DNA from: Penicillus capitatus
Taxonomy: Eukaryota; Plantae; Chlorophyta
Length of the DNA: 64,000 nt
Reading direction: 5' to 3'
Assembly: GCA_965649825.1 (NCBI GenBank)
Contig: OZ287697.1
Location: 2,245,826-2,309,825 of the forward strand
The notes under the pieces: model-generated
What the model was told of the DNA's origin: nothing
Databases searched by the model: none
What the model saw: only the letters and a program-made list of their open reading frames with translations
In this document: positions 5,629 through 64,000 of the stretch, piece by piece
How positions within the stretch are numbered: position 1 is the first letter of the stretch
Layout: the number at the start of each line of letters is the position of its first letter
Made by a program: the position numbers and the translations under genes

Positions 5629-5824
5629 AATGCCTCTTGCTTTGCTTGCCACACCATCATCATTATCACAGATGGCACGCTGACATTCATTGATTGCTTT
5701 AACTGTTCACTGAAGTCCGCGTGATCCATTGCTGTTTTTGTTGTTCAGACATATCTCGCTCGGCAATTCGAGTGTTGGGACTGTTCCAGGAAAACAGGTG
5801 ACAGACACCCACCGTGCGGATTAT

Positions 5825-14155: not shown

Positions 14156-14194
14156 ATAATTGTTACCAAACGTACTTTTCTTGTGGAAGTTAAC

Positions 14195-23013: not shown

Positions 23014-26409
<3,396 letters not shown>

Positions 26410-38843: not shown

Positions 38844-38877
38844 CTCTGGCGGATAGATGACATGTATCGTCAGCTAA
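38844..38877. promoter_or_regulatory. 34-bp spacer between divergent AMPD and copine start codons (inferred bidirectional promoter zone)
   Basis: Geometry of the inferred start codons only. Confidence 0.35.
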
Positions 38878-39812: not shown

Positions 39813-40023
39813 AGACTAATCCTATTCATGGAAAGCCTTTCAGATGGATAAGGCCAGGGAAACCCTTTGCTTGGTTGAAGTCTTTAGATTTCGTCTCTAG
39901 ATCCGTACTTAAGCTCAGCATTCGTGTGAAAATCTATCCGCCGATTTGTTTGAACATGTCATTATTGTTTAAGATTCAGATCGTTTGTGTGTTCCCAGTG
40001 CCGCTGTCGCGAGAAATCACGAA

Positions 40024-41750: not shown

Positions 41751-42219
41751 CTGCACGACCGTGTCGATTCTCTGCTTTGAGAAGAAGAGAGTTTTTAACC
41801 AAACCCAAAGATTCAAGCCGTCCTGCAACGTCTGTGTAGCACATGTCTCAAAAATCGAACGATCGAACTTCACCATCCGAGATCGTCTTTTCTCTGCTAC
41901 AAAGATCCTGATGGCAAATACGGTCTGTTGCTTACGAACACGATGACCAGTTGTTCTGCCAATCCGGTTGCCAGGTCACTTTAGCTATCCTTTCATGCAG
42001 ATCGCATGCATTAATTAAAGAAAAGAGTCGGTTTTGGCCGTTTCGGGCACAGTACCATGTTGATTAAGACAAGAGCACCAATGCATTTGAGCAACCATGC
42101 AGTTTACAAAACAAATCTCAATCAACAGCAGAACAATTGCTGATGAGCATTCCTGTATTGATGTAGGTACTGGGATGGCAACTTCCTTACAAAACCAAAT
42201 CATTGGTCATGTTGCTGTG

Positions 42220-43236: not shown

Positions 43237-43693
43237 TCGAACAAATAGTTGGCTGTGGAGAGAAGCACTTCTTTTTTGGCTTCCTCTATAATGCGAAAAG
43301 AGAAGCTACACAAAACAGAGATACGGGAATGGTTGAATGCATCGCTCAAAACTGATGGACAGCGGTCGAAGCCAAAAATAGCTAGCATCCAATCGACATT
43401 GGTCTTTCGCCACCGTCGACTTGGACATCACACCAGGTGCCAAGGCTGTATCGTGTGAGAATGTGAATGTTCATCAGTTTCTGAGAGCCACCAAGGCGAC
43501 ATTGGGTAGACACGAAAAGGACGGGTGAGTGACAGATAGAGCATGCTGTTACCACTTCACGGTGTCCGATGGACTGTCCAACAGCGACTTCTTGACAGAA
43601 TTGAGGAGTGCAAAACTACTTCATTGACAGAGTTACAAAGGGTGGAAAGGAACGCTGGCACGAGTTCTCGGAGGTAACTGACCAGAGGGATAC

Positions 43694-45013
43694 ATGAGAG
43701 AGTTCGGAGGGGTGGGAAGGGTGACCAGTCCAAGACGTCCTATGGATCTCTCGACAGTGCCAACTCCAGGGGGATGGCTCCCAATCTCTGAACCCGAATC
43801 CGCGATCAAAGCCTCGGCACAGAGGCCCTTTCCGCATGCTGTGGAAACAGACGTCACATCAGACGCTGTTTCAGCGCCCACGGACGGCAGTCAAATCAAA
43901 CGTCGGACGTACGAGACTGTCCCATTTCAGCAGACGGCGACGTACTCCGCGCTCTGCTTTCCGAAAAAGGTTTGGTGTCCTAGACGTGACGGCGTAACAA
44001 ACAACGGCCTAGGCGTGATTCCTCTCTGCCTGCTGCGGACTCTGGCAGATCGTTTTGCAACCTGTCTGGACCGAGGGGCTTCGACCGAAGACCTGGAGGA
44101 AGACGTCTTCAAGAAGCTAGAAGACAACAGGGAATCCGTTGCCATTCCCTTGGACAACGGAGGAGAGCCTCATCTGCCCATGGTAAACAAACAAAATCTT
44201 CAAACTTTGGTTTCGAAAGGAGATTGTGCATGACAGGAGAGAGGAGGACGAGGCACCATCTGTGTGGATAAGCGAGAAGTGCCAGCCGCACTTCTAGGGG
44301 CAATCGACAGGACAAATTTTAGGACTCATCTCTACACCCTTAAGGTAAAACAATGAGAACTACTATCAGATCTGTACAAACTGATTGTGTGACAGGTGGG
44401 AGATTACATTCTTGCCCCGGAGATCATCGTCGAGAGGAAGACAGTGGCGGATTTCCACGCTTCCTTTATCAAGAGGAGGGTCTTCTCTCAGATCGAGAGG
44501 ATGACGCTCCAATACGAGCAGCCAATGCTGCTGATTGAATCCTACAAGGGGCACTATCGCCAGCGACGGTCACAAAGGACAGACCTGTCGATGCCATCCA
44601 AGGACATCATTTCTCGCCTCGTCCTCCTCGTCAATCAATTTCCATCACTCGGGTACTTAGTGATGATGCTTTTCTATTCCATAGACAGATGGTTTTTTCT
44701 GTTTTACAGATTGATCTGGTCATCATCTCTTGACGCGACCTGTCGTGTTTTCGTCGATCTGAAGGAGAATCGCTTCGATCCGGATCCGGATGAAATCGAG
44801 AGACGAAATAAAATGATGACAGATCATCTGACTGATTGGGACTCCATCGACATCTACAGGTGTGCCTTCTTCTTTTTGTCTATCTGTCGTAGTAGACATG
44901 TGTATAGGAATTTGCCCGAAAACTTAACTAGCATACACCAGAAGCTGCTAGAATCTGTTCTAGAATTAAATAACTCTTCTAAACAGTCATTTGTACTTTT
45001 CTTTAACTTGTAA
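43694..45013 (+). CDS. XPF-derived ERCC4 endonuclease-domain protein (variant A), no helicase-like N-terminus, 5 exons
   Basis: EEDVFKKL..VAIP linker, ICVDKREV, LK|VGDYIL..IIVERKTVADF, LLIE, IISRLVLL..FP.L.LIWSSS..AT. Introns at 44183-44236, 44345-44395, 44653-44709 and 44860-44907 are all GT-AG and keep frame. The start (ATG 43694) is uncertain. Confidence 0.7.
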
Positions 45014-45457
45014 AAGAAGAAACATAAAGTGTGACATCATATTGACTCCGGCTATGACCATAATTCTGCGACAGAATCGTAGTTTTTGGCTGCCTGTGAG
45101 AGTGACAGAGTGGGCATAGCTGTAAGCACAGCAGGTTCCGTCGGACATATTGAGTGCAACATCTATGTTCGACATTGCGTATCGGCTGCATGTTGTGAAT
45201 TCTCCACCGACAGTACCTGTTGAATTTCTGCCGAGACGATGAGACATGATTGTTCGGTTAAAGGAATATCGTAACACACAAACTCATTACAATGGCAGAG
45301 TTCAGATATGACGGATTGAATGTTGAACACGTACGGCGGCTTGTTCTTGGCACGACGATGCCAGTGTGTCGACGAACGTAACTCACGTCGGTCGTTATCC
45401 TTCATCATTCATCATTGCTTAGTGTCTCATACCACATGCAATAAAAACACTCATGGT
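44008..45457. repeat. Diverged partial copy of the array unit, homologous to 49939-51442
   Basis: Homology starts abruptly at CCTAGGCGTGATT (44008 vs 49939) and continues with substitutions and indels to the start of the exact array. Confidence 0.9.
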
Positions 45458-45547
45458 AAAACACAACAGAGCGAACGCACTGACTCGCAAAAGGAACACA
45501 GCAACAAAGAATAACAAGATGCGCCCCCAATGATATCTGTACATTCA

Positions 45548-46918
45548 TCAGGGCTGTGCTGCTCCTTTCTGCAAATCCTTAGCATCTTTATTCGGTTCCT
45601 CGGGGGAGGACGGAGGTCCAATCAGGGACAGGATGGTCGGTAGGAGGAGCAGGCCCGTAAACATGCCGGCGATAGTGGAAATGGAATACTGAACGAACAA
45701 ACGATTGCTAATGGCTGGATAATCCGAAAGAGCAGAGGGCAGCATTCCGAGAAAAGTTGTCACGCCGCCATTGAATACTGCAACGCCCATAGTCTGGAGC
45801 GCGTGTGTAGAACGTGTGAGACGATCCCCTTCGGCCAACATGAAATCTCGAGCAATGTGCGCACAGAACTCCACGGACAACCCAACCGTCACAATGAAAG
45901 CAACGTAGGCAGAGTAATCCAGATCGATAACAGTCCAACTGGTCATTCCAACCGTCAGCAGAACAGAGAGCAGCACGCAGACAGACACGATGAGCGCGGC
46001 AAAGATGTTGACGATGAGGGGCAGCATGATGACCGTCGCGACAGCCATGGAGATGCCTATCGCCTCTACCGTCTTCAACGCCAGGTCTTCGTACTGCTCG
46101 CCGATGGCATACACCACGTAGTCGAACGGATAGACCTCGATCGACTGTCGATCGAGGATGTCGCGTCCCTCCTGGAGGTGGTCCAGTTGACTGGGCACGC
46201 TCGTGAGGCCTCTGGCATAGACGTACGACCGCGTGCCCTTTGGCGTGCCGAAGGTGTTTCTCTCCGTCGTCGTCTCCTCGTCCAGGTTGATGAAGACTCT
46301 GGATGCACGTCCCGTCGCCGTGTTGTTCGGGAAATCCACCCAGTAGCTCTCGATCTTGCTGTCAAAGCCTTCGGGGTTCTCGTAGAAGTTGCGCTGTGTC
46401 AGCATTGGTCGATGAGGGCAGTAGCATTCCACCGAGTCCTTTTTGTACTGGCACCGTTCTCTCATTCCGACTGCCGCCTGCGGACAATGCGTCTCGCACC
46501 TCTGCTCACACTCTTCGGCTGACGCGACGCCGGCGCAGATGTTCTTCGACGGATGCGCAAAATCGGCAGAGGAGAAGCCATCGTAGTACCAGTGCACTTC
46601 GTCCATGCAGATCTCGTTCGAGCAGAACTTCGCTTCGACATACTGCGTGTAGAAATCCATCCACGACTGCGACATCAGCCGCTCCTCTGTTCGGTATCCT
46701 CCATCAACGTATTCGTACTCCGACTGCCTGGCCGCTTCAAACTCTTGAGGGTCTGTGTCGTCGACGGAGTCTCGGAACACGATGTTGATCTGCGACGTGT
46801 CGAAGTAGTCTTCCGAGGTTGTGAGGTAATCTTAAGTGTAACTCTTCGGGGACACAGACTCGCTCAAATCGAGCCCCTGTTCGAATGAAATCGTGTAGTA
46901 GATGCCAAACGGAGTCTG
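45548..46918 (-). pseudogene. Patched/NPC1-like (RND/SSD family) C-terminal half, 5'-truncated, with in-frame TAA at 46832-46834 (copy 1)
   Basis: FGIYYTISFEQGLDLSESVSPKSYT*DY, then ectodomain, then TM8-12 with VGLSVEFCAHIAR and GVAVFNGGVTTFLG. No N-terminal half is present upstream. Confidence 0.8.
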
Positions 46919-48281
46919 CTAGTGTAGCGAACATGTTCTCTAAAATTCAGATTATGAGACGACAACGTCGAGAATGTTTGACAACTCGTCAGAACAATTC
47001 AGCGCGCCGAACAGCAAAATGCGCACCTTGAACAACAACCACTAGACGGATGCTCTATGCAGCGAGAGGTAAATTTGTTATCTATCTGGGAATCCTTGGG
47101 AATAGTCAGACAAAACGCAACAATCGACCATAGCACTTCTTACACCGCATGCATCCTGAAAGTAGCGGGTTCGCTCAGAAAAAGGAGAGAAATGACTCAC
47201 CGCATCCTTTGCGGCAGAGCTTCATACAATGCGCTGCAGACGGATGACTGGCATGCTCCGAAGGAATCTCTCCGGTCCACTGCCCGATACCATGCCTTTG
47301 ATCTGCAACGCAGAACGGCATTCGGAGATTGGCCATTTCCGACTGTGTTTGGCAATACGAAGATTGGTCGGCGGTGCATCTGCCACGAAACGGCTCTCAG
47401 TGACACGTATCGGCAAGAAGAAGCATCTTACGAAGATAGCGGCGAAACCTGGTGCCTGTCTTGTCTGTCGTCGGTTCTATGTCCCCAACAGACAATGGAA
47501 TCTCGATGAGAGACGAAATATGTCGCTTACTTTCATCGATCTCATAGGAGCTTGCCTGTTCAGAACATTAAGGAATGCGTCGTGTCATAAGGGTGAGCGA
47601 GTGTCAGAAGACAGCGACTGCGTTAATCGCTCAGGTAACGAAAACCGCTCGTCATCTACCCGCCTGTGATTGTTACTGTCACTGGAACGGGGCGACAACT
47701 GTCAGAATTCGCCACACCAGATGCGTCACGACTGCCATGATGTCTCTTTTGAGCACACTCCGCACTGAAACTTAAAGACAGAAACGTCGGAGGTCATTGC
47801 GCCTCGAATTGCTTTACGTGGACAACCTCTTACCGTGCGTCATTTGGCCTTTAGTCACATCACCAGTCAGCGTTCCCGTCTGCCATACTCAATCGGCTTC
47901 TTTAGTGAATGCGGGACAGTTTTTAGCTAGACATGCACTCCCAAGATGAAAGACCACAAAGACAATGCTTCTCAGTGTCCACCGTCTTCTACAATGTCAC
48001 ATCCGTCCCGTCCAGAGTCTAGGATTCGTCGGCGTCGTCAGTTTTCCATCATTAAAAATGCATGCCATCTTTGCAACCAGCGTTTCTTCAATTTCGCCTT
48101 CAGGTTTGCAGTCGACGACCGTTTCCCACACCCCAGCAGACACTTCTTTCTGTAGGCCGCGCTCGGAATCTCTCTCGGCGCGACCGGTCTCGCCGCCAAG
48201 ACCTTCGACAGCACAGCTCGACGCTGCGGCGCGCGAGACCACAGGTGTCGCAGCGTCGAGTCGAAGACGCAAGGAAGCGCC

Positions 48282-50948
48282 ATGACTGAGACCGCAATAA
48301 CGAACCCCTTCGTTGGCGTCGCCCTCAGGAGAACGGGCGACGTCGTCGACCTTCAGCCTTTCCATTCGACAGGGGAATACGTCGAGACGCTGGAGATCGA
48401 CCTCCGAACCGGCACGGCCGAAGCTTCGACGCAGCCGCGTTTCCTTCGTAGCTGCATCGTGTTCCCTGGACTTCTGGGAATGCTGCGCCTTGCCAAAGCA
48501 ACGGTCCTCGTCACTATCAAGGAAGCAAAACAAGTACACTCGCCTGCTCACGCAGACCGGACAGCGACAGCCTTGGTTCTGCAGGTCGCAACGGTGCATG
48601 GTTCTCCAGTTTACCGAGTGGTTCAGACAGAACTGCATCTTCCCAGGGGACGTTTATCATCACAAGATGCCAAGTGCGTGCATAGATGTATGGACGCGTG
48701 ATTTGTGCGAGCCCCTGTGCGTAGCCACATCGAATTGGCGAGATCGGCAGTGGATCCCAAACAAGCCGGAAGAGGACTGTACTTCAGCGGCGGAATCCGA
48801 CTGACGCTGACCACTGAGCGACAGGCGGCCGTCAGCAATGAAAGAGGAGAAGGGTCGTGGGAACTGGAAGACACCCGCTTCTCCTGGAATCGCCATCTGA
48901 TGGAACCCGTCACACGTAATGCACATCCTTTTCCGAGAGAATGTCCAGATGTCGGCGATGTAGAGCTGAGAGCACATGGATTTGTGTTACCTGTCATTCA
49001 AGGCTTCGTACAGGAGCTGACAGATTCGGAATTTTCGCAGCGAGTGACCGGGAAGTTGACCCTTGTGGCACGTCGTTCAGTGAGACGCCTGGGCACACGC
49101 AGCTGGAGAAGGGGCGCCGATCTCCAAGTGATTCTTCGCGTCTACGCTTACGAACCTGTATATGTCGATGTCAGGGATCTGTGGCGAATTTTGTCGAGAC
49201 AGAACAGCTTCTGTGTCTGTCGAATGGACATATGTGTTCGTTCGTTCAGCTACGAGGACCAATCCCCGTGTTTTGGGCAATCATTCCGAACGTCAAGTAC
49301 AAACCATCCACGCGTCTTGGGAGAGAGATTGACTACACACATGCCTTCGTTGTTCACGTCAATGACCTTCTCCGTACGTACACAGTAAGCAAGACCTGTG
49401 TCGTGGGGGGATGGGATACAGAGATGTTGTTGGATAGGAATGCGTTGCGGTGAATTTGGCACACGCCACCGGATCTGAGGGTTCCTTGACAAGTACATCC
49501 GACAATGCCACTCGGCGTTTCGCAAGGACGAAAGACGGCTTCTGTCTCATCAATTTTGATTTCCATAAAGAATGTGGAACGACTCGATATCATCGTATCT
49601 CCATCCTATTCGACAGAATCCGAGCAGATCTGGATCGCTTTGGCGAGTTCGTTATCGTATCTCTATCCTCGTCTGATTTCGTGTGCGAACACAAGTGCAT
49701 GACAGGAGGAGGGTCGAGCAACATCTGTTCAAGACGGCATCGTTCGCACCAATTGTGTCGATTGCCTTGATCGCACCAACGTCGTGCATACCGTGTTTGG
49801 CCGTTATGCCTTGGAGTCTTTTCTCAAGAAAGAGCATCTACTTGGGGTCCAAGCGTCTCTGCCAGCATCTTTCCCTCATGTCAGATACAACGCCATCTCC
49901 TGTCATCTCGTCCAAAGCTTTGTGTTTGTGCAGGTCGCCCTAGGCGTGATTCCGCTCTGCCTGCTGCGGACCCTGACAGGTCGTTTTGCAACCTGTCTGA
50001 ACAGAGGGGCTTCGACCGAAGACCTGGAGGAAGACGTCTTCAAGAAGCTAGAAGACAACAGGGAATCCGTTGCCATTCCCTTGGACAACGGAGGAGAGCC
50101 TCATCTGCCCATGGTAAACAAACAAAATCTTCAAACTTTGGTTTCGAAAGGAGATTGTGCATGACAGGAGAGAGGAGGACGAGGCAACATCATAGTGGAC
50201 ACGCGAGAAGTGGCAGCCTCACTTCTCGCGGCGATCGACAGGGCAGATTTCAAGACCGATCTTCACCTCATCAAGGTAAGACAATGAGAATTAATAACAT
50301 ATCTTTACAAACTGATTGTGTGACAGGTGGGCGATTACATCCCGACCCCCGACATTGCCATCGAGAGGAAGACAGTGGCAGATTTCCACGCTTCCTTCAT
50401 CAAGAGGAGGGTCTTTTCCCAAGCTGCCAAGATGACCACACACTTTAAGATGGCGATGCTGCTGATTGAGTCTGACGGGGGTCAGCCCCATTTAAGACAT
50501 GATGAGAAGATCGCCCTGTCGATCGATTCGAGGGACATCATTTCTCGCCTCGTCCTCCTCATCCATCACTTTCCAACACTCAGGTACTTAGTGATGCTTG
50601 TATGTTCTACAAACAGATCGTTTTTCTGTTCTACAGGGTGGTTTGGTCGTCATCTCCGGATGCGACCTGTCAACTGCTTGTCAAGCTCAAGCAGAATCGC
50701 CCGAATCCGGACAGTACAGAGGTCAAGAGACGTACAGAAAGGGCGAATGATGACTTGACAGACTGGAAGACAGTTGACATCTGCAGGTGTGCCATTCCTT
50801 TAGTCTATCTGCCATGTTTGATCATCGTCGTCCTTGACATGTGTTTAGAAATTTGCCCGGAGAGACAACAACCATCCGCCGGAAGCTGCTAAAAGCTTTC
50901 AGAACGTTCAATAATTCTCCTCGACAGTATTTTGTACAGTTTTTTTAA
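48282..50948 (+). CDS. Chimeric SAC1-like phosphoinositide phosphatase::XPF ERCC4 nuclease fusion (copy 1), about 11 exons
   Basis: SAC motifs GLYFS, FSWNRHL, FVLPVIQGFV, RRS..GTR..RRGAD, GSVANFVETEQ, FDFHKEC and RTNCVDCLDRTN (49748-49780) read in frame into STEDLEEDVFKKL, IIVDTRE, VGDYI..AIERKTVADF and LRVVWSSSP. Stop at 50946-50948. Confidence 0.72.
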
Positions 50949-50949
50949 C

Positions 50950-51390
50950 TTGTAATAGAAGACACATAAAGTGTGACATCATATTGACTCCGGCTGTGAC
51001 CACAATTCCGCGACAGAATCGTAGTTTTTGGCTGCCTGTGTGAGTGAGAGTGACAGAGTGACCATAGCTGCAAGTGAGAGAGTTACCATAGCAGGTTCCG
51101 TCGGACATATTGAGTTTTGCAACATCTATGTTCGACATTGCGTATCGGCTGCATGTTGTGAATTCTCCATCGACAGTATCTGTTGAATTTCTGCCGAGAC
51201 GATGAGACATGATTGTTCGGTTAAAGGAGTATCACAACACACAAACTCATTACAATGGCAGAGTTCAGATATGACGGATTGAATGTTGAACACGTACGGC
51301 GGCTTGTTCTTGGCACAACGATGCCAGTGTGTCGACGAACGTCGACACATGGATCAATGAACGAAATCACGTCGGTCGTTATCGTTTATC
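50950..51390 (-). CDS. Possible small hidden coding region, convergent with the ERCC4 gene, present in every unit and at 45010-45400
   Basis: Four indels between this segment and its diverged homologue measure 6, 12, 3 and 21 nt, all multiples of three. ORFs at 50908-51210 and 44987-45277 align. No family recognised. Confidence 0.35.
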
Positions 51391-51532
51391 ATTCATCATT
51401 GTTTATGTCTCCCACACCACATGCAATAAAAAACACTCAGGCAAAACACAACAGAGCGAACGCACTGACTCGCAAAAGGAACACAGCAACAAAGAATAAC
51501 AAGATGCGCCCCCAATGATATCTGTACATTCA

Positions 51533-52903
51533 TCAGGGCTGTGCTGCTCCTTTCTGCAAATCCTTAGCATCTTTATTCGGTTCCTCGGGGGAGGACGGAG
51601 GTCCAATCAGGGACAGGATGGTCGGTAGGAGGAGCAGGCCCGTAAACATGCCGGCGATAGTGGAAATGGAATACTGAACGAACAAACGATTGCTAATGGC
51701 TGGATAATCCGAAAGAGCAGAGGGCAGCATTCCGAGAAAAGTTGTCACGCCGCCATTGAATACTGCAACGCCCATAGTCTGGAGCGCGTGTGTAGAACGT
51801 GTGAGACGATCCCCTTCGGCCAACATGAAATCTCGAGCAATGTGCGCACAGAACTCCACGGACAACCCAACCGTCACAATGAAAGCAACGTAGGCAGAGT
51901 AATCCAGATCGATAACAGTCCAACTGGTCATTCCAACCGTCAGCAGAACAGAGAGCAGCACGCAGACAGACACGATGAGCGCGGCAAAGATGTTGACGAT
52001 GAGGGGCAGCATGATGACCGTCGCGACAGCCATGGAGATGCCTATCGCCTCTACCGTCTTCAACGCCAGGTCTTCGTACTGCTCGCCGATGGCATACACC
52101 ACGTAGTCGAACGGATAGACCTCGATCGACTGTCGATCGAGGATGTCGCGTCCCTCCTGGAGGTGGTCCAGTTGACTGGGCACGCTCGTGAGGCCTCTGG
52201 CATAGACGTACGACCGCGTGCCCTTTGGCGTGCCGAAGGTGTTTCTCTCCGTCGTCGTCTCCTCGTCCAGGTTGATGAAGACTCTGGATGCACGTCCCGT
52301 CGCCGTGTTGTTCGGGAAATCCACCCAGTAGCTCTCGATCTTGCTGTCAAAGCCTTCGGGGTTCTCGTAGAAGTTGCGCTGTGTCAGCATTGGTCGATGA
52401 GGGCAGTAGCATTCCACCGAGTCCTTTTTGTACTGGCACCGTTCTCTCATTCCGACTGCCGCCTGCAGACAATGCGTCTCGCACCTCTGCTCACACTCTT
52501 CGGCTGACGCGACGCCGGCGCAGATGTTCTTCGACGGATGCGCAAAATCGGCAGAGGAGAAGCCATCGTAGTACCAGTGCACTTCGTCCATGCAGATCTC
52601 GTTCGAGCAGAACTTCGCTTCGACATACTGCGTGTAGAAATCCATCCACGACTGCGACATCAGCCGCTCCTCTGTTCGGTATCCTCCATCAACGTATTCG
52701 TACTCCGACTGCCTGGCCGCTTCAAACTCTTGAGGGTCTGTGTCGTCGACGGAGTCTCGGAACACGATGTTGATCTGCGACGTGTCGAAGTAGTCTTCCG
52801 AGGTTGTGAGGTAATCTTAAGTGTAACTCTTCGGGGACACAGACTCGCTCAAATCGAGCCCCTGTTCGAATGAAATCGTGTAGTAGATGCCAAACGGAGT
52901 CTG
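51533..52903 (-). pseudogene. Patched/NPC1-like C-terminal half (copy 2)
   Basis: Matches copy 1 except a P-to-L SNP at 52467. Same TAA at 52817-52819. Confidence 0.8.
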
Positions 52904-54266
52904 CTAGTGTAGCGAACATGTTCTCTAAAATTCAGATTATGAGACGACAACGTCGAGAATGTTTGACAACTCGTCAGAACAATTCAGCGCGCCGAACAGC
53001 AAAATGCGCACCTTGAACAACAACCACTAGACGGATGCTCTATGCAGCGAGAGGTAAATTTGTTATCTATCTGGGAATCCTTGGGAATAGTCAGACAAAA
53101 CGCAACAATCGACCATAGCACTTCTTACACCGCATGCATCCTGAAAGTAGCGGGTTCGCTCAGAAAAAGGAGAGAAATGACTCACCGCATCCTTTGCGGC
53201 AGAGCTTCATACAATGCGCTGCAGACGGATGACTGGCATGCTCCGAAGGAATCTCTCCGGTCCACTGCCCGATACCATGCCTTTGATCTGCAACGCAGAA
53301 CGGCATTCGGAGATTGGCCATTTCCGACTGTGTTTGGCAATACGAAGATTGGTCGGCGGTGCATCTGCCACGAAACGGCTCTCAGTGACACGTATCGGCA
53401 AGAAGAAGCATCTTACGAAGATAGCGGCGAAACCTGGTGCCTGTCTTGTCTGTCGTCGGTTCTATGTCCCCAACAGACAATGGAATCTCGATGAGAGACG
53501 AAATATGTCGCTTACTTTCATCGATCTCATAGGAGCTTGCCTGTTCAGAACATTAAGGAATGCGTCGTGTCATAAGGGTGAGCGAGTGTCAGAAGACAGC
53601 GACTGCGTTAATCGCTCAGGTAACGAAAACCGCTCGTCATCTACCCGCCTGTGATTGTTACTGTCACTGGAACGGGGCGACAACTGTCAGAATTCGCCAC
53701 ACCAGATGCGTCACGACTGCCATGATGTCTCTTTTGAGCACACTCCGCACTGAAACTTAAAGACAGAAACGTCGGAGGTCATTGCGCCTCGAATTGCTTT
53801 ACGTGGACAACCTCTTACCGTGCGTCATTTGGCCTTTAGTCACATCACCAGTCAGCGTTCCCGTCTGCCATACTCAATCGGCTTCTTTAGTGAATGCGGG
53901 ACAGTTTTTAGCTAGACATGCACTCCCAAGATGAAAGACCACAAAGACAATGCTTCTCAGTGTCCACCGTCTTCTACAATGTCACATCCGTCCCGTCCAG
54001 AGTCTAGGATTCGTCGGCGTCGTCAGTTTTCCATCATTAAAAATGCATGCCATCTTTGCAACCAGCGTTTCTTCAATTTCGCCTTCAGGTTTGCAGTCGA
54101 CGACCGTTTCCCACACCCCAGCAGACACTTCTTTCTGTAGGCCGCGCTCGGAATCTCTCTCGGCGCGACCGGTCTCGCCGCCAAGACCTTCGACAGCACA
54201 GCTCGACGCTGCGGCGCGCGAGACCACAGGTGTCGCAGCGTCGAGTCGAAGACGCAAGGAAGCGCC

Positions 54267-56933
54267 ATGACTGAGACCGCAATAACGAACCCCTTCGTTG
54301 GCGTCGCCCTCAGGAGAACGGGCGACGTCGTCGACCTTCAGCCTTTCCATTCGACAGGGGAATACGTCGAGACGCTGGAGATCGACCTCCGAACCGGCAC
54401 GGCCGAAGCTTCGACGCAGCCGCGTTTCCTTCGTAGCTGCATCGTGTTCCCTGGACTTCTGGGAATGCTGCGCCTTGCCAAAGCAACGGTCCTCGTCACT
54501 ATCAAGGAAGCAAAACAAGTACACTCGCCTGCTCACGCAGACCGGACAGCGACAGCCTTGGTTCTGCAGGTCGCAACGGTGCATGGTTCTCCAGTTTACC
54601 GAGTGGTTCAGACAGAACTGCATCTTCCCAGGGGACGTTTATCATCACAAGATGCCAAGTGCGTGCATAGATGTATGGACGCGTGATTTGTGCGAGCCCC
54701 TGTGCGTAGCCACATCGAATTGGCGAGATCGGCAGTGGATCCCAAACAAGCCGGAAGAGGACTGTACTTCAGCGGCGGAATCCGACTGACGCTGACCACT
54801 GAGCGACAGGCGGCCGTCAGCAATGAAAGAGGAGAAGGGTCGTGGGAACTGGAAGACACCCGCTTCTCCTGGAATCGCCATCTGATGGAACCCGTCACAC
54901 GTAATGCACATCCTTTTCCGAGAGAATGTCCAGATGTCGGCGATGTAGAGCTGAGAGCACATGGATTTGTGTTACCTGTCATTCAAGGCTTCGTACAGGA
55001 GCTGACAGATTCGGAATTTTCGCAGCGAGTGACCGGGAAGTTGACCCTTGTGGCACGTCGTTCAGTGAGACGCCTGGGCACACGCAGCTGGAGAAGGGGC
55101 GCCGATCTCCAAGTGATTCTTCGCGTCTACGCTTACGAACCTGTATATGTCGATGTCAGGGATCTGTGGCGAATTTTGTCGAGACAGAACAGCTTCTGTG
55201 TCTGTCGAATGGACATATGTGTTCGTTCGTTCAGCTACGAGGACCAATCCCCGTGTTTTGGGCAATCATTCCGAACGTCAAGTACAAACCATCCACGCGT
55301 CTTGGGAGAGAGATTGACTACACACATGCCTTCGTTGTTCACGTCAATGACCTTCTCCGTACGTACACAGTAAGCAAGACCTGTGTCGTGGGGGGATGGG
55401 ATACAGAGATGTTGTTGGATAGGAATGCGTTGCGGTGAATTTGGCACACGCCACCGGATCTGAGGGTTCCTTGACAAGTACATCCGACAATGCCACTCGG
55501 CGTTTCGCAAGGACGAAAGACGGCTTCTGTCTCATCAATTTTGATTTCCATAAAGAATGTGGAACGACTCGATATCATCGTATCTCCATCCTATTCGACA
55601 GAATCCGAGCAGATCTGGATCGCTTTGGCGAGTTCGTTATCGTATCTCTATCCTCGTCTGATTTCGTGTGCGAACACAAGTGCATGACAGGAGGAGGGTC
55701 GAGCAACATCTGTTCAAGACGGCATCGTTCGCACCAATTGTGTCGATTGCCTTGATCGCACCAACGTCGTGCATACCGTGTTTGGCCGTTATGCCTTGGA
55801 GTCTTTTCTCAAGAAAGAGCATCTACTTGGGGTCCAAGCGTCTCTGCCAGCATCTTTCCCTCATGTCAGATACAACGCCATCTCCTGTCATCTCGTCCAA
55901 AGCTTTGTGTTTGTGCAGGTCGCCCTAGGCGTGATTCCGCTCTGCCTGCTGCGGACCCTGACAGGTCGTTTTGCAACCTGTCTGAACAGAGGGGCTTCGA
56001 CCGAAGACCTGGAGGAAGACGTCTTCAAGAAGCTAGAAGACAACAGGGAATCCGTTGCCATTCCCTTGGACAACGGAGGAGAGCCTCATCTGCCCATGGT
56101 AAACAAACAAAATCTTCAAACTTTGGTTTCGAAAGGAGATTGTGCATGACAGGAGAGAGGAGGACGAGGCAACATCATAGTGGACACGCGAGAAGTGGCA
56201 GCCTCACTTCTCGCGGCGATCGACAGGGCAGATTTCAAGACCGATCTTCACCTCATCAAGGTAAGACAATGAGAATTAATAACATATCTTTACAAACTGA
56301 TTGTGTGACAGGTGGGCGATTACATCCCGACCCCCGACATTGCCATCGAGAGGAAGACAGTGGCAGATTTCCACGCTTCCTTCATCAAGAGGAGGGTCTT
56401 TTCCCAAGCTGCCAAGATGACCACACACTTTAAGATGGCGATGCTGCTGATTGAGTCTGACGGGGGTCAGCCCCATTTAAGACATGATGAGAAGATCGCC
56501 CTGTCGATCGATTCGAGGGACATCATTTCTCGCCTCGTCCTCCTCATCCATCACTTTCCAACACTCAGGTACTTAGTGATGCTTGTATGTTCTACAAACA
56601 GATCGTTTTTCTGTTCTACAGGGTGGTTTGGTCGTCATCTCCGGATGCGACCTGTCAACTGCTTGTCAAGCTCAAGCAGAATCGCCCGAATCCGGACAGT
56701 ACAGAGGTCAAGAGACGTACAGAAAGGGCGAATGATGACTTGACAGACTGGAAGACAGTTGACATCTGCAGGTGTGCCATTCCTTTAGTCTATCTGCCAT
56801 GTTTGATCATCGTCGTCCTTGACATGTGTTTAGAAATTTGCCCGGAGAGACAACAACCATCCGCCGGAAGCTGCTAAAAGCTTTCAGAACGTTCAATAAT
56901 TCTCCTCGACAGTATTTTGTACAGTTTTTTTAA
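54267..56933 (+). CDS. Chimeric SAC1::ERCC4 fusion (copy 2)
   Basis: ORF track translations are the same as copy 1 at offset +5985. Confidence 0.72.
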
Positions 56934-57517
56934 CTTGTAATAGAAGACACATAAAGTGTGACATCATATTGACTCCGGCTGTGACCACAATTCCGCGACA
57001 GAATCGTAGTTTTTGGCTGCCTGTGTGAGTGAGAGTGACAGAGTGACCATAGCTGCAAGTGAGAGAGTTACCATAGCAGGTTCCGTCGGACATATTGAGT
57101 TTTGCAACATCTATGTTCGACATTGCGTATCGGCTGCATGTTGTGAATTCTCCATCGACAGTATCTGTTGAATTTCTGCCGAGACGATGAGACATGATTG
57201 TTCGGTTAAAGGAGTATCACAACACACAAACTCATTACAATGGCAGAGTTCAGATATGACGGATTGAATGTTGAACACGTACGGCGGCTTGTTCTTGGCA
57301 CAACGATGCCAGTGTGTCGACGAACGTCGACACATGGATCAATGAACGAAATCACGTCGGTCGTTATCGTTTATCATTCATCATTGTTTATGTCTCCCAC
57401 ACCACATGCAATAAAAAACACTCAGGCAAAACACAACAGAGCGAACGCACTGACTCGCAAAAGGAACACAGCAACAAAGAATAACAAGATGCGCCCCCAA
57501 TGATATCTGTACATTCA

Positions 57518-58888
57518 TCAGGGCTGTGCTGCTCCTTTCTGCAAATCCTTAGCATCTTTATTCGGTTCCTCGGGGGAGGACGGAGGTCCAATCAGGGACA
57601 GGATGGTCGGTAGGAGGAGCAGGCCCGTAAACATGCCGGCGATAGTGGAAATGGAATACTGAACGAACAAACGATTGCTAATGGCTGGATAATCCGAAAG
57701 AGCAGAGGGCAGCATTCCGAGAAAAGTTGTCACGCCGCCATTGAATACTGCAACGCCCATAGTCTGGAGCGCGTGTGTAGAACGTGTGAGACGATCCCCT
57801 TCGGCCAACATGAAATCTCGAGCAATGTGCGCACAGAACTCCACGGACAACCCAACCGTCACAATGAAAGCAACGTAGGCAGAGTAATCCAGATCGATAA
57901 CAGTCCAACTGGTCATTCCAACCGTCAGCAGAACAGAGAGCAGCACGCAGACAGACACGATGAGCGCGGCAAAGATGTTGACGATGAGGGGCAGCATGAT
58001 GACCGTCGCGACAGCCATGGAGATGCCTATCGCCTCTACCGTCTTCAACGCCAGGTCTTCGTACTGCTCGCCGATGGCATACACCACGTAGTCGAACGGA
58101 TAGACCTCGATCGACTGTCGATCGAGGATGTCGCGTCCCTCCTGGAGGTGGTCCAGTTGACTGGGCACGCTCGTGAGGCCTCTGGCATAGACGTACGACC
58201 GCGTGCCCTTTGGCGTGCCGAAGGTGTTTCTCTCCGTCGTCGTCTCCTCGTCCAGGTTGATGAAGACTCTGGATGCACGTCCCGTCGCCGTGTTGTTCGG
58301 GAAATCCACCCAGTAGCTCTCGATCTTGCTGTCAAAGCCTTCGGGGTTCTCGTAGAAGTTGCGCTGTGTCAGCATTGGTCGATGAGGGCAGTAGCATTCC
58401 ACCGAGTCCTTTTTGTACTGGCACCGTTCTCTCATTCCGACTGCCGCCTGCGGACAATGCGTCTCGCACCTCTGCTCACACTCTTCGGCTGACGCGACGC
58501 CGGCGCAGATGTTCTTCGACGGATGCGCAAAATCGGCAGAGGAGAAGCCATCGTAGTACCAGTGCACTTCGTCCATGCAGATCTCGTTCGAGCAGAACTT
58601 CGCTTCGACATACTGCGTGTAGAAATCCATCCACGACTGCGACATCAGCCGCTCCTCTGTTCGGTATCCTCCATCAACGTATTCGTACTCCGACTGCCTG
58701 GCCGCTTCAAACTCTTGAGGGTCTGTGTCGTCGACGGAGTCTCGGAACACGATGTTGATCTGCGACGTGTCGAAGTAGTCTTCCGAGGTTGTGAGGTAAT
58801 CTTAAGTGTAACTCTTCGGGGACACAGACTCGCTCAAATCGAGCCCCTGTTCGAATGAAATCGTGTAGTAGATGCCAAACGGAGTCTG
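57518..58888 (-). pseudogene. Patched/NPC1-like C-terminal half (copy 3)
   Basis: Same translation as copy 1. TAA at 58802-58804. Confidence 0.8.
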
Positions 58889-60251
58889 CTAGTGTAGCGA
58901 ACATGTTCTCTAAAATTCAGATTATGAGACGACAACGTCGAGAATGTTTGACAACTCGTCAGAACAATTCAGCGCGCCGAACAGCAAAATGCGCACCTTG
59001 AACAACAACCACTAGACGGATGCTCTATGCAGCGAGAGGTAAATTTGTTATCTATCTGGGAATCCTTGGGAATAGTCAGACAAAACGCAACAATCGACCA
59101 TAGCACTTCTTACACCGCATGCATCCTGAAAGTAGCGGGTTCGCTCAGAAAAAGGAGAGAAATGACTCACCGCATCCTTTGCGGCAGAGCTTCATACAAT
59201 GCGCTGCAGACGGATGACTGGCATGCTCCGAAGGAATCTCTCCGGTCCACTGCCCGATACCATGCCTTTGATCTGCAACGCAGAACGGCATTCGGAGATT
59301 GGCCATTTCCGACTGTGTTTGGCAATACGAAGATTGGTCGGCGGTGCATCTGCCACGAAACGGCTCTCAGTGACACGTATCGGCAAGAAGAAGCATCTTA
59401 CGAAGATAGCGGCGAAACCTGGTGCCTGTCTTGTCTGTCGTCGGTTCTATGTCCCCAACAGACAATGGAATCTCGATGAGAGACGAAATATGTCGCTTAC
59501 TTTCATCGATCTCATAGGAGCTTGCCTGTTCAGAACATTAAGGAATGCGTCGTGTCATAAGGGTGAGCGAGTGTCAGAAGACAGCGACTGCGTTGATCGC
59601 TCAGGTAACGAAAACCGCTCGTCATCTACCCGCCTGTGATTGTTACTGTCACTGGAACGGGGCGACAACTGTCAGAATTCGCCACACCAGATGCGTCACG
59701 ACTGCCATGATGTCTCTTTTGAGCACACTCCGCACTGAAACTTAAAGACAGAAACGTCGGAGGTCATTGCGCCTCGAATTGCTTTACGTGGACAACCTCT
59801 TACCGTGCGTCATTTGGCCTTTAGTCACATCACCAGTCAGCGTTCCCGTCTGCCATACTCAATCGGCTTCTTTAGTGAATGCGGGACAGTTTTTAGCTAG
59901 ACATGCACTCCCAAGATGAAAGACCACAAAGACAATGCTTCTCAGTGTCCACCGTCTTCTACAATGTCACATCCGTCCCGTCCAGAGTCTAGGATTCGTC
60001 GGCGTCGTCAGTTTTCCATCATTAAAAATGCATGCCATCTTTGCAACCAGCGTTTCTTCAATTTCGCCTTCAGGTTTGCAGTCGACGACCGTTTCCCACA
60101 CCCCAGCAGACACTTCTTTCTGTAGGCCGCGCTCGGAATCTCTCTCGGCGCGACCGGTCTCGCCGCCAAGACCTTCGACAGCACAGCTCGACGCTGCGGC
60201 GCGCGAGACCACAGGTGTCGCAGCGTCGAGTCGAAGACGCAAGGAAGCGCC

Positions 60252-62918
60252 ATGACTGAGACCGCAATAACGAACCCCTTCGTTGGCGTCGCCCTCAGGA
60301 GAACGGGCGACGTCGTCGACCTTCAGCCTTTCCATTCGACAGGGGAATACGTCGAGACGCTGGAGATCGACCTCCGAACCGGCACGGCCGAAGCTTCGAC
60401 GCAGCCGCGTTTCCTTCGTAGCTGCATCGTGTTCCCTGGACTTCTGGGAATGCTGCGCCTTGCCAAAGCAACGGTCCTCGTCACTATCAAGGAAGCAAAA
60501 CAAGTACACTCGCCTGCTCACGCAGACCGGACAGCGACAGCCTTGGTTCTGCAGGTCGCAACGGTGCATGGTTCTCCAGTTTACCGAGTGGTTCAGACAG
60601 AACTGCATCTTCCCAGGGGACGTTTATCATCACAAGATGCCAAGTGCGTGCATAGATGTATGGACGCGTGATTTGTGCGAGCCCCTGTGCGTAGCCACAT
60701 CGAATTGGCGAGATCGGCAGTGGATCCCAAACAAGCCGGAAGAGGACTGTACTTCAGCGGCGGAATCCGACTGACGCTGACCACTGAGCGACAGGCGGCC
60801 GTCAGCAATGAAAGAGGAGAAGGGTCGTGGGAACTGGAAGACACCCGCTTCTCCTGGAATCGCCATCTGATGGAACCCGTCACACGTAATGCACATCCTT
60901 TTCCGAGAGAATGTCCAGATGTCGGCGATGTAGAGCTGAGAGCACATGGATTTGTGTTACCTGTCATTCAAGGCTTCGTACAGGAGCTGACAGATTCGGA
61001 ATTTTCGCAGCGAGTGACCGGGAAGTTGACCCTTGTGGCACGTCGTTCAGTGAGACGCCTGGGCACACGCAGCTGGAGAAGGGGCGCCGATCTCCAAGTG
61101 ATTCTTCGCGTCTACGCTTACGAACCTGTATATGTCGATGTCAGGGATCTGTGGCGAATTTTGTCGAGACAGAACAGCTTCTGTGTCTGTCGAATGGACA
61201 TATGTGTTCGTTCGTTCAGCTACGAGGACCAATCCCCGTGTTTTGGGCAATCATTCCGAACGTCAAGTACAAACCATCCACGCGTCTTGGGAGAGAGATT
61301 GACTACACACATGCCTTCGTTGTTCACGTCAATGACCTTCTCCGTACGTACACAGTAAGCAAGACCTGTGTCGTGGGGGGATGGGATACAGAGATGTTGT
61401 TGGATAGGAATGCGTTGCGGTGAATTTGGCACACGCCACCGGATCTGAGGGTTCCTTGACAAGTACATCCGACAATGCCACTCGGCGTTTCGCAAGGACG
61501 AAAGACGGCTTCCGTCTCATCAATTTTGATTTCCATAAAGAATGTGGAACGACTCGATATCATCGTATCTCCATCCTATTCGACAGAATCCGAGCAGATC
61601 TGGATCGCTTTGGCGAGTTCGTTATCGTATCTCTATCCTCGTCTGATTTCGTGTGCGAACACAAGTGCATGACAGGAGGAGGGTCGAGCAACATCTGTTC
61701 AAGACGGCATCGTTCGCACCAATTGTGTCGATTGCCTTGATCGCACCAACGTCGTGCATACCGTGTTTGGCCGTTATGCCTTGGAGTCTTTTCTCAAGAA
61801 AGAGCATCTACTTGGGGTCCAAGCGTCTCTGCCAGCATCTTTCCCTCATGTCAGATACAACGCCATCTCCTGTCATCTCGTCCAAAGCTTTGTGTTTGTG
61901 CAGGTCGCCCTAGGCGTGATTCCGCTCTGCCTGCTGCGGACCCTGACAGGTCGTTTTGCAACCTGTCTGAACAGAGGGGCTTCGACCGAAGACCTGGAGG
62001 AAGACGTCTTCAAGAAGCTAGAAGACAACAGGGAATCCGTTGCCATTCCCTTGGACAACGGAGGAGAGCCTCATCTGCCCATGGTAAACAAACAAAATCT
62101 TCAAACTTTGGTTTCGAAAGGAGATTGTGCATGACAGGAGAGAGGAGGACGAGGCAACATCATAGTGGACACGCGAGAAGTGCCAGCCTCACTTCTCGCG
62201 GCGATCGACAGGGCAGATTTCAAGACCGATCTTCACCTCATCAAGGTAAGACAATGAGAATTAATAACATATCTTTACAAACTGATTGTGTGACAGGTGG
62301 GCGATTACATCCCGACCCCCGACATTGCCATCGAGAGGAAGACAGTGGCAGATTTCCACGCTTCCTTCATCAAGAGGAGGGTCTTTTCCCAAGCTGCCAA
62401 GATGACCACACACTTTAAGATGGCGATGCTGCTGATTGAGTCTGACGGGGGTCAGCCCCATTTAAGACATGATGAGAAGATCGCCCTGTCGATCGATTCG
62501 AGGGACATCATTTCTCGCCTCGTCCTCCTCATCCATCACTTTCCAACACTCAGGTACTTAGTGATGCTTGTATGTTCTACAAACAGATCGTTTTTCTGTT
62601 CTACAGGGTGGTTTGGTCGTCATCTCCGGATGCGACCTGTCAACTGCTTGTCAAGCTCAAGCAGAATCGCCCGAATCCGGACAGTACAGAGGTCAAGAGA
62701 CGTACAGAAAGGGCGAATGATGACTTGACAGACTGGAAGACAGTTGACATCTGCAGGTGTGCCATTCCTTTAGTCTATCTGCCATGTTTGATCATCGTCG
62801 TCCTTGACATGTGTTTAGAAATTTGCCCGGAGAGACAACAACCATCCGCCGGAAGCTGCTAAAAGCTTTCAGAACGTTCAATAATTCTCCTCGACAGTAT
62901 TTTGTACAGTTTTTTTAA
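60252..62918 (+). CDS. Chimeric SAC1::ERCC4 fusion (copy 3)
   Basis: As copy 1, with SNPs at 61513 (C-to-R in the SAC domain) and 62183 (A-to-P after VDTREV). Confidence 0.72.
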
Positions 62919-63502
62919 CTTGTAATAGAAGACACATAAAGTGTGACATCATATTGACTCCGGCTGTGACCACAATTCCGCGACAGAATCGTAGTTTTTG
63001 GCTGCCTGTGTGAGTGAGAGTGACAGAGTGACCATAGCTGCAAGTGAGAGAGTTACCATAGCAGGTTCCGTCGGACATATTGAGTTTTGCAACATCTATG
63101 TTCGACATTGCGTATCGGCTGCATGTTGTGAATTCTCCATCGACAGTATCTGTTGAATTTCTGCCGAGACGATGAGACATGATTGTTCGGTTAAAGGAGT
63201 ATCACAACACACAAACTCATTACAATGGCAGAGTTCAGATATGACGGATTGAATGTTGAACACGTACGGCGGCTTGTTCTTGGCACAACGATGCCAGTGT
63301 GTCGACGAACGTCGACACATGGATCAATGAACGAAATCACGTCGGTCGTTATCGTTTATCATTCATCATTGTTTATGTCTCCCACACCACATGCAATAAA
63401 AAACACTCAGGCAAAACACAACAGAGCGAACGCACTGACTCGCAAAAGGAACACAGCAACAAAGAATAACAAGATGCGCCCCCAATGATATCTGTACATT
63501 CA

Positions 63503-64000
63503 TCAGGGCTGTGCTGCTCCTTTCTGCAAATCCTTAGCATCTTTATTCGGTTCCTCGGGGGAGGACGGAGGTCCAATCAGGGACAGGATGGTCGGTAGGA
63601 GGAGCAGGCCCGTAAACATGCCGGCGATAGTGGAAATGGAATACTGAACGAACAAACGATTGCTAATGGCTGGATAATCCGAAAGAGCAGAGGGCAGCAT
63701 TCCGAGAAAAGTTGTCACGCCGCCATTGAATACTGCAACGCCCATAGTCTGGAGCGCGTGTGTAGAACGTGTGAGACGATCCCCTTCGGCCAACATGAAA
63801 TCTCGAGCAATGTGCGCACAGAACTCCACGGACAACCCAACCGTCACAATGAAAGCAACGTAGGCAGAGTAATCCAGATCGATAACAGTCCAACTGGTCA
63901 TTCCAACCGTCAGCAGAACAGAGAGCAGCACGCAGACAGACACGATGAGCGCGGCAAAGACGTTGACGATGAGGGGCAGCATGACGACCGTCGCGACAGC
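63503..64000 (-). CDS. Patched/NPC1-like 3' end (copy 4), 5' part outside the window
   Basis: Same C-terminal TM block with two I-to-V substitutions (63961, 63985). Intact or pseudogene status cannot be judged here. Confidence 0.7.
   Translation of the reverse strand, partial: AVATVVMLPLIVNVFAALIVSVCVLLSVLLTVGMTSWTVIDLDYSAYVAFIVTVGLSVEFCAHIARDFMLAEGDRLTRSTHALQTMGVAVFNGGVTTFLGMLPSALSDYPAISNRLFVQYSISTIAGMFTGLLLLPTILSLIGPPSSPEEPNKDAKDLQKGAAQP

Follow-up and report, generated by a model that had tools for sequence, protein, structure and literature searches.

The window analyzed here is a continuous 64,000-bp stretch of DNA, from the nuclear genome of a gene-dense eukaryote with introns, tentatively a chlorophyte green alga. 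Its right-hand part is occupied by a head-to-tail array of a kilobase-scale unit built from pieces of unrelated genes, with a short XPF-type nuclease gene, here called X0, immediately to the left (Table 1). The window also encodes a GH2 protein; exact-match look-ups with this protein, the SAC1 N-terminal ORF, and the Patched ORF gave no identical entry in the collection used. A lag-5985 self-comparison, implemented in Python, revealed an exact 5,985-bp period spanning positions 45458 to 64000 (18,543 bp), with the last mismatch to the left of the array at position 45457. Tandem Repeats Finder, run with a maximum period of 500, gave no rows. The array comprises three full copies plus 588 bp, i.e., 3.098 copies in the window, the fourth being cut by the window end. 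Differences between copies are all substitutions, with no indels and no irregularities at the junctions, and the seven lag mismatches correspond to six variable unit positions, which confirms the initial annotation of three full copies and a partial one with about six single-nucleotide differences. An array of rDNA or other RNA genes was considered and dropped, since a scan against Rfam at gathering thresholds gave no matches to rRNA, tRNA, or any known RNA family and ARAGORN predicted no genes.

Table 1. Features of the tandem array and its left flank (window positions; unit offsets where indicated)
Feature	Position	Strand	Basis or remark
X0, short XPF-type (ERCC4) nuclease gene	43694-45013	+	Pfam ERCC4 match, 1.5e-13
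X0 model exons	43694-44182, 44237-44344, 44396-44652, 44710-44859, 44908-45013	+	Introns 48-57 nt, GT..AG
Older direct repeat	44005-45457	+	Paralogous to 49936-51442, the final 1.5 kb of the unit; blastn, global alignment
Unit copy 1	45458-51442		5,985 bp; lag-5985 identity
Patched/NPC1-like fragment	45548-46780	-	Weak MMPL match; repeats at +5985 and +11970
Spacer, apparently non-coding	46781-48281		No Pfam, no tblastx signal
SAC1 fragment	48282-49879	+	Syja_N (Pfam) matches; alignment to yeast Sac1 80-417
SAC1 fragment model exons	48282-48673, 48725-49127, 49175-49377, 49494-49650, 49706-49879	+	
SAC1-to-XPF junction	49880-49935	+	54-nt GT..AG intron-like stretch (49880-49933) + 2 nt
X1, XPF-type 3' part (nuclease domain + tail) fused to SAC1	49936-50950	+	Pfam ERCC4 match
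X1 3' flank	50951-51442	+	Ends at the unit-to-unit junction 51442/51443
Unit copy 2	51443-57427		Only difference from copy 1: 52467 G>A, Pro>Leu in the Patched-like ORF
Unit copy 3	57428-63412		Differs from copies 1 and 2 at 59595, 61513, 62183; related-assembly allele kept at all three
Partial copy 4	63413-64000		Versus copies 1-3: 63961 private; 63985 = related-assembly allele
Variable position	Offset 549		Private to copy 4
Variable position	Offset 573		Copy 4 versus copies 1-3
Variable position	Offset 1025		Private to copy 2 (52467)
Variable positions	Offsets 2168, 4086, 4756		Copy 3 versus copies 1 and 2

Domain content was analyzed by ORF-wise Pfam scans and PDB sequence searches. The results bear out an earlier description of the unit as a patchwork: a Patched-like gene lacking its 5' end, a SAC1 gene lacking its 3' end, and the 3' part of a gene of the XPF type. 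The Patched-like fragment represents the C-terminal third of the transporter, with part of extracellular loop 2 and TM8-12 only, and its ORF aligns solely to residues ~980-1184 of PTCH1 and 1075-1255 of NPC1. The head of this ORF carries no ATG and the sterol-sensing half is missing; the full Patched/NPC1 architecture of 12 TM helices, a sterol-sensing domain, and two large loops is thus not found in the fragment. Its match to the multi-exon Patched gene of a relative (locus L001) is limited to the last exons (L001 9491-10803), and a tblastx search with that full gene found no upstream Patched exons anywhere in the window. The spacer that follows has no Pfam match in any of its ORFs and no tblastx match to any of the fetched loci. 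It is also the most diverged part of the unit relative to the related assembly described below (6.1%, together with six indels, none of them a multiple of three in length), and the idea that it is a fourth gene piece was dropped on account of these frame-breaking indels and the missing Pfam and tblastx signal. The GC content of the block formed by the Patched piece, the spacer, and the SAC1 piece is 51-55%, versus 47.1 +/- 1.3% in the flank, an offset consistent with pieces copied from elsewhere.

The SAC1 fragment covers ~445 of ~590 codons, from the start codon up to and including the catalytic CX5R(T) motif. It covers residues 4-433 of a 588-aa relative (P0125), with the homology ending at '...SLPASFPH', and the stretch 'CVDCLDRT' aligns with the yeast Sac1 catalytic loop, so that the CX5R(T/S) motif of the Sac domain is present. 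Neither a complete Sac domain nor the C-terminal membrane anchors are found, since homology stops at ~433 of 588 in the relative and ~417 in yeast Sac1; the gene is cut inside the phosphatase domain and lacks its 3' quarter with the TM anchors. Searches for Patched and SAC1 homologues returned no ORFs from sister or outgroup assemblies. At the junction with X1, the reading frame is kept whether the 54-nt stretch is spliced or unspliced, and homology to X0 begins at 49936, right after it. The resulting chimeric ORF is 725 aa long, uninterrupted across 49880-49935, with modelled GT..AG introns, and intact in the window copies. X1 itself has intact splice sites and frame in the window and keeps the GDY...ERK motif; an ERCC4 nuclease domain with the GDXn-ERK motif is therefore present, and Pfam matches ERCC4 in both X0 and X1.

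The spliced model of X0 encodes 369 aa and aligns to human XPF over residues 677-824 only. The helicase-like N-terminal domain of eukaryotic XPF is absent from both X0 and X1, and a minus-strand ORF (42220-43236) leaves no space for it upstream of X0. X0 overlaps a second, older repeat that lies directly against the array. According to blastn, 44005-45453 matches unit positions 4479-5982 with 81% identity in a gapped alignment of 1516 columns. This repeat is itself a mosaic: 44075-44255 is 100% identical to its counterpart, the coding center ~70%, and the 3' flank ~95%. The dS between X0 and X1 is 0.07 at the 5' end versus 0.4-1.2 in the center. A blastn self-comparison detected no other internal repeats in the left 45 kb. 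The initial annotation had placed the array start at 45458. The exact period does begin there, but the repeat homology starts earlier, in the 44005-45457 paralogue, which had been missed. Within a few bases of 45457/45458, identity jumps from 81-95% to 100%. In codon comparison, X0 and X1 align without gaps over 263 aa, free of stops, with a dN/dS of 0.44.

For comparison, we used a contig of an independently assembled close relative (ENA ERZ25074695, ctg339801, locus L006). L006 is collinear with window positions 33692-51621, with zero differences over 39813-46029. It has the mosaic once, followed by the unit-to-unit junction (L006 17775/17776), a 179-bp stretch of a second unit with 7.8% divergence, and then an RNase H-integrase (retroelement) fragment. 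As assembled, the two related genomes differ in copy number, with at least three units in the window versus one plus 179 bp in the relative, whose contig was compared up to its last 6 kb. The unit diverges by 4.3% between the two assemblies versus ~0.02-0.07% among the window copies. Because the relative carries a single mosaic, the same junction, a diverged 179-bp second unit, and a retroelement fragment, the mosaic and the unit-to-unit junction are judged from this comparison to be old, and the near-identical array to be particular to the lineage of the window. Two earlier proposals therefore gain support, namely that the segment was rearranged before it was amplified and that the amplification was recent, in the sense of being young relative to strain divergence.

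The six variable positions were polarized with the related assembly as outgroup. Derived alleles are common to copies 1 and 2 at three sites and to copies 1-3 at one, and the remaining two are singletons, giving a nested copy genealogy without homoplasy, (((1,2),3),4). A match between variant and sister alleles was dropped as a coincidence statistic, since such a match follows automatically whenever copies 1 and 2 carry a derived change. Derived alleles that are nested and common to adjacent copies are what stepwise duplication would predict, unlike random consensus errors, and this pattern argues against random assembly error. A more specific artefact would be that the real genome has about two units, or fewer per haplotype, the remainder arising from extra traversals of an assembly graph cycle or from haplotype variants chained in tandem. 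Only one base separates copies 1 and 2 and the window ends within the array, both of which speak for such an artefact, and an assembler could have turned true haplotype variants into additional passes around the cycle; two 99.6%-identical contigs found in a related species show that haplotype variation occurs in such samples. Moreover, the related contigs bear metaMDBG-style names, and long-read metagenome assemblers, the class in question, have been reported to emit tandem repeats without read support (bioRxiv 10.1101/2025.04.22.649783). That survey counted repeats of >=80% identity, with per-sample means of 88-96%, mainly in short, often circular contigs of <50 kbp (bioRxiv 10.1101/2025.04.22.649783). 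The window resembles its "excessive repeats" in having kilobase-unit tandem repeats at the contig level, and the surveyed assemblies share their naming style with the related contigs; unlike those repeats, the window's copies are >=99.9% identical and lie in a long, gene-dense chromosomal context, with nested variants that fit an independent assembly. A graph cycle, however, needs a true junction and an identical unit start, so at least one full unit and a second identical start must be real, and the junction itself is found in the independent assembly. The four unit versions are distinguishable, free of homoplasy, and polarized by that same assembly, and the array shows neither indels nor junction irregularities. 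We therefore consider this artefact unlikely. The copy number of at least three is the assembled one, and over-expansion by the assembler is possible.

The initial annotation had also raised a possible dosage increase of the chimeric gene. Relative to the related assembly, dN/dS is 0.84 for the SAC1 part, 1.22 for Patched, and 0.30 for X1, compared to a control value of 0.27 for the flanking DUF2828 gene. Purifying selection is thus not seen across the fused parts, the low value being that of X1 taken by itself, and the relative's copy has a +1-nt frameshift in X1 at ~50183 and, within the CX5R(T) motif of SAC1, a substitution of A for T. Each of the five coding differences between the window copies is non-synonymous (5/5), among them a Cys>Arg and an Ala>Pro replacement within the chimera. 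Evolution of the SAC1 and Patched pieces is thus about neutral, and the dosage proposal finds no support in these data. For X1, the gapless, stop-free alignment to X0 despite the high central dS, together with the low dN/dS to the relative, points to probable constraint over a large part of its history. One could imagine an adaptive amplification, in which a functional SAC1::XPF chimera, with the SAC1 promoter and N terminus and an ERCC4 C terminus, would be expressed and selected for dosage. The ORF with canonical introns in all window copies, the retained catalytic motifs of both partners, and the conservation of X1 speak for it, but a SAC1 part without a membrane anchor and cut within its phosphatase domain, its near-neutral dN/dS, the lesions in the relative, and the exclusively non-synonymous differences between copies speak against it, and we regard this scenario as quite improbable. 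Equally doubtful is the version in which SAC1::XPF would be a young expressed gene born by exon shuffling, its copy number recently raised by selection and the gene lost by frameshift in the other lineage. Since the pieces behave as non-functional DNA, neutrality, and not adaptation of dosage, is the most likely account of the expansion.

Taken together, the array is probably genuine: a kilobase-scale "macrosatellite" in which a relic mosaic was expanded in tandem, recently in evolutionary terms, and the expansion would have come about by unequal recombination between old direct repeats. Before the expansion, the locus already held the mosaic and a junction that returns from the 3' flank of the nuclease to the Patched tail, about one and a bit units, as the relative shows. 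Duplication of the 5,985-bp interval could then have followed from unequal (non-allelic) homologous exchange or replication slippage, the candidate exchange partners being two old direct repeats, the X0 3' part with the Patched tail and X1 with the Patched tail. Later unequal exchange between the now perfect copies may have added further units, with the left edge repeat apparently escaping homogenization. The direct repeats stand one period apart, as non-allelic homologous recombination (NAHR) needs (44005-45457 versus 49936-51442, with 81% identity and tracts of up to 100%). The second repeat resembles X1 as far as 51442; rightward of that position it matches the first Patched tail exactly. 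Unequal crossover, one of the options put forward initially, is now favored because an older direct repeat flanks the array and the junction pre-exists in the relative. Some observations count against this reading: simple NAHR does not specifically predict an edge as sharp as the identity switch at 45457/45458, and the intact 725-aa ORF and splice sites, together with the probable past constraint on X1, fit poorly with a relic.

The patchwork structure could also have come from gene-fragment capture by a transposon of the Helitron or Pack type, or from an extrachromosomal circle that was copied by a rolling-circle mechanism and reintegrated as a tandem array. Patchworks of unrelated gene fragments are typical of such captures, rolling-circle copying yields head-to-tail arrays with an exact period, a retroelement fragment adjoins the locus in the relative, and the GC contents of the block and its flank are unlike. 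However, domain scans of the unit found no transposase, Rep, or helicase, and the unit shares no similarity with the relative's retroelement; a search directed at inverted repeats and hairpins found no terminal inverted repeats or notable hairpins in or around it, and there are no dispersed copies within the window. The junction, furthermore, is a pre-existing old one, which unequal exchange explains without any circle. We consider an origin by capture or circle very improbable.

If the expansion by unequal exchange is real, the locus is a clear natural case in which an old partial duplication seeded later array growth, and it combines this with an unhomogenized edge copy and a copy genealogy that can be read off six SNPs. 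In addition, two haplotypes otherwise identical over the adjoining 6 kb would be polymorphic for copy number. The array is an ordinary kind of structural variant and not a new kind of biological system; its use lies in providing a worked case of structural-variant evolution in a poorly sampled algal lineage and a test locus for assembler handling of near-identical 6-kb repeats.

Several known systems share features with this locus. Helitrons and Pack-MULEs capture gene fragments, and amplification through eccDNA is exemplified by the EPSPS replicon of Amaranthus palmeri. The window resembles these cases in its patchwork of unrelated fragments, its possible rolling-circle array, and the amplification of a rearranged segment, but differs in that neither terminal inverted repeats, transposition genes, nor dispersed copies were found in the window and in a junction that pre-exists in the relative. 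In yeast, segmental duplications formed by replication-based or homologous mechanisms are direct and intrachromosomal, span a few kilobases or more, and arise between short or diverged repeats (PMC2518615); for the window, unlike for yeast, the mechanism is read from sequence only. In population surveys of Drosophila, tandem segmental duplications with breakpoints inside genes produce 5'- or 3'-truncated and in-frame chimeric genes that segregate as copy-number variants, most of which are expected to be neutral or deleterious (PMC4069613, PMC5460883). The window unit contains the same kinds of truncated and in-frame chimeric structures, yet its chimeric junction is older than the expansion, it consists of fragments only, with no whole gene, and it is present in at least 3 copies, not 2. 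Macrosatellites and other kilobase-unit VNTR arrays, such as human D4Z4, are homogenized by unequal exchange. While only ~3 copies are seen in the window, of a unit that is a mosaic of unrelated gene relics and shows no sign of chromatin or functional roles, the array is D4Z4-like in its kilobase-scale unit with an ORF, its near-identical inner copies, its more diverged edge copy, and a copy number that varies between haplotypes.

A lag comparison over the whole window revealed a 5,985-base self-match spanning 45458-64000, with position 45457 as the final mismatch before the run. Seven lag mismatches correspond to six variable unit positions, all differences between copies being substitutions, and the period, copies and variable sites of the initial annotation were therefore correct. 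Tandem Repeats Finder gave an empty output for this array solely because its longest period is 500. No internal repeats were found in the left 45 kb, and no rRNA, tRNA or Rfam family was detected in the whole window.

Coordinates of the array, its gene pieces and other features of the window
Feature	Position	Strand	Remark
Trypsin-like serine protease ORF	14183-15103	+	
Trypsin-like serine protease ORF	15434-16384	+	
GH2 beta-galactosidase	23014-26313	-	intronless, 1,099 aa
X0, short XPF-type gene	43694-45013		gene model; includes part of the 44005-45457 repeat
Unit copy 1	45458-51442		lag identity
Unit copy 2	51443-57427		lag identity
Unit copy 3	57428-63412		lag identity
Partial unit copy 4	588 bp, reaching window end		lag identity
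Patched-like piece	45548-46780	-	410-codon ORF
Spacer	46781-48281		between Patched-like and SAC1 pieces
SAC1 piece	ATG at 48282, homology to about 49879	+	spliced model
SAC1/XPF junction stretch	49880-49933		54 nt, intron-like
XPF piece (X1)	from 49936		3' part of XPF-type ERCC4 nuclease gene

Introns are short (about 47-116 nt) and bounded by GT..AG, and the genome is eukaryotic. Similarity of the Patched-like ORF is confined to the final portion of Patched and NPC1 (PTCH1 ~980-1184, NPC1 1075-1255). On a relative's contig, L001, lies a long Patched gene with multiple exons and a sterol-sensing domain; of this gene the window matches only the final 1.3 kb, the upstream exons being absent throughout the 64 kb. 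The fragment begins within an extracellular loop, lacking the preceding helix and a start codon, and the spacer has no detectable coding signal. According to the alignments, the spliced SAC1 model corresponds to yeast Sac1 80-417, CX5R(T) loop included, and covers residues 4-433 of a relative's 588-aa protein; it is truncated inside the phosphatase domain, so that the last quarter, with the membrane anchors, is missing. The closest named SAC1 relatives are green algal (Bryopsis, 40%), with Ostreobium, Coccomyxa and Raphidocelis among the matches listed, and homologues of the flanking gene DUF2828 gave no clear taxonomic signal; the genome is tentatively placed among the chlorophytes. Since the frame stays intact whether the 54-nt junction stretch is spliced or not, the window encodes an uninterrupted 725-aa SAC1::XPF chimera. 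The Patched-spacer-SAC1 block (45458-49935) has a GC content of 51-55% versus 47.1 +/- 1.3% in the flank, where all 1.5-kb segments of the leftmost 43.5 kb lie at or below 50.5%, which is consistent with fragments copied from elsewhere.

Adjoining the array on its left, 44005-45457 is a paralogue of the last 1.5 kb of the unit (81% identical, with gaps) that had initially been overlooked. X0, the XPF-type gene overlapping it, aligns to human XPF 677-824 and lacks the helicase-like N-terminal domain. Identity between X0 and X1 is a mosaic of a perfect tract, a diverged coding centre (dS 0.4-1.2) and a 3' flank about 95% identical. The perfect tract (180 nt, 44075-44255 versus 50006-50186) contains a whole 54-nt intron and sits in XPF paralogues that are elsewhere 70-80% identical; it likely reflects gene conversion older than the split between the window and its sister, a close relative's assembly. 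As the protein alignment covers 263 residues with no gaps or stops at a dN/dS of 0.44, X1 is an old paralogue, probably under constraint during a large part of its evolution, and bears gene-conversion tracts at its edges.

Two public assemblies were located via DUF2828. The sister (ENA ERZ25074695, contig ctg339801, here L003 and L006) is collinear with window 33692-51621 and shows zero differences over 39813-46029 (6.2 kb), about 0.8% divergence to the left of this tract and 4.3% over the remainder of the unit. The right boundary of the identical tract is offset 573 of the first unit (offsets being counted within one unit) and looks like a recombination breakpoint within the array. In the sister, the Patched-spacer-SAC1-X1 mosaic is present once, and its junction from X1 flank to Patched tail is the same as the unit-to-unit junction of the window. 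Both are thus older than the split of these two close haplotypes. Only the window lineage has the array of multiple near-identical copies, which supports the earlier proposal that a segment already rearranged was recently amplified. The sister's second Patched tail is only 179 bp long, 7.8% diverged, and abutted by a 5'-truncated RNase H-integrase fragment of Ty3/gypsy-type order (L006 17955-20540) that has no counterpart in the window. The outgroup (ERZ26696514) is 86% identical and collinear only as far as 43513, about 180 bp upstream of X0, with nothing detectably shared past that point; its next 1.26 kb (20627-21887 in L004/L005) has no window similarity and no Pfam domain. As aligned here, X0 and the array are located beyond the synteny break. 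The outgroup contigs L004 (4.08 Mb) and L005 (0.51 Mb), each at about 170x, share 99.6% identity across the 21.9 kb that were aligned and are probably two haplotypes or strains within one sample. The beta-galactosidase aligns collinearly with E. coli LacZ over its full length (E about 1e-180) and is conserved in both the sister and the outgroup, which are likewise eukaryotic; it may have been acquired long ago from a bacterium. The two protease ORFs are an adjacent tandem paralogue pair.

Polarising the six variable positions against the sister gave a derived allele common to copies 1 and 2 at three offsets (2168, 4086 and 4756), one common to copies 1-3 at offset 573, and private alleles at offsets 1025 (copy 2) and 549 (copy 4). 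The resulting genealogy, (((1,2),3),4), is nested and free of homoplasy, as fits stepwise duplication, since random consensus errors would give singletons. An assembler could in principle have inflated the copy number by threading haplotype variants into extra passes round a cycle: the related contigs bear metaMDBG-style names, and long-read metagenome assemblers are known to output tandem repeats unsupported by any read (bioRxiv 10.1101/2025.04.22.649783). However, the sister-polarised alleles are nested, and the junction occurs independently in the sister. Moreover, no assembler could build the repeat unless the sample contained the junction and, directly after it, sequence identical to the unit start. 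It is therefore very likely that the tandem duplication, with two or more units, is real, and three or more copies in the window lineage are likely.

The old structure would have consisted of two direct repeats one period apart, the 3' part of X0 with a Patched tail and X1 with the second tail. Slippage during replication, or unequal exchange, involving these two repeats would duplicate the exact 5,985-bp interval and leave a hybrid repeat, X1-like on the left and first-tail-like on the right, a pattern consistent with that at 49936-51621. Unhindered exchange among perfect copies could then have added units and maintained their similarity, and the leftmost repeat would remain diverged, as expected of an array edge. 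We infer this mechanism as a whole from sequence comparison. Between the origins first suggested, unequal crossover is favoured; a rolling-circle or eccDNA origin would look alike in sequence and is not needed. Terminal inverted repeats, element genes and similarity to the sister's retroelement fragment gave no support for transposon capture of the pieces. The sister looks like a recombinant: as far as offset 572 of the first unit it and the window descend from a very recent common ancestor, and beyond this point it follows a diverged, non-expanded haplotype. This suggests that copy number at the array is a segregating polymorphism.

The initial annotation had also raised a dosage increase of the chimeric gene, whose ORF is indeed intact in the window. 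Between window and sister, dN/dS was 0.84 for the SAC1 part (30 non-synonymous and 12 synonymous changes), 1.22 for the Patched fragment (about 10 changes only) and 0.30 for X1, compared to 0.27 for the DUF2828 control. The sister carries a +1-nt frameshift in X1 at about 50183 and a CX5R-A catalytic motif in SAC1, and six spacer indels have lengths not divisible by three. Among the window copies, each of the five coding differences changes an amino acid (Ile>Val twice, Pro>Leu, Cys>Arg and Ala>Pro). Taken together with the truncations, these observations indicate that the gene pieces behave as relics, and dosage adaptation of a SAC1::XPF gene is not supported.

The array is a tandem duplication of kb-sized units with partial and chimeric genes, a kind already well described. 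Macrosatellites are another well-described example of such arrays. Drosophila tandem duplications with partial or chimeric genes (PMC4069613, PMC5460883) and yeast segmental duplications (PMC2518615) are of the same kind, to which the array, of modest interest, adds one member.
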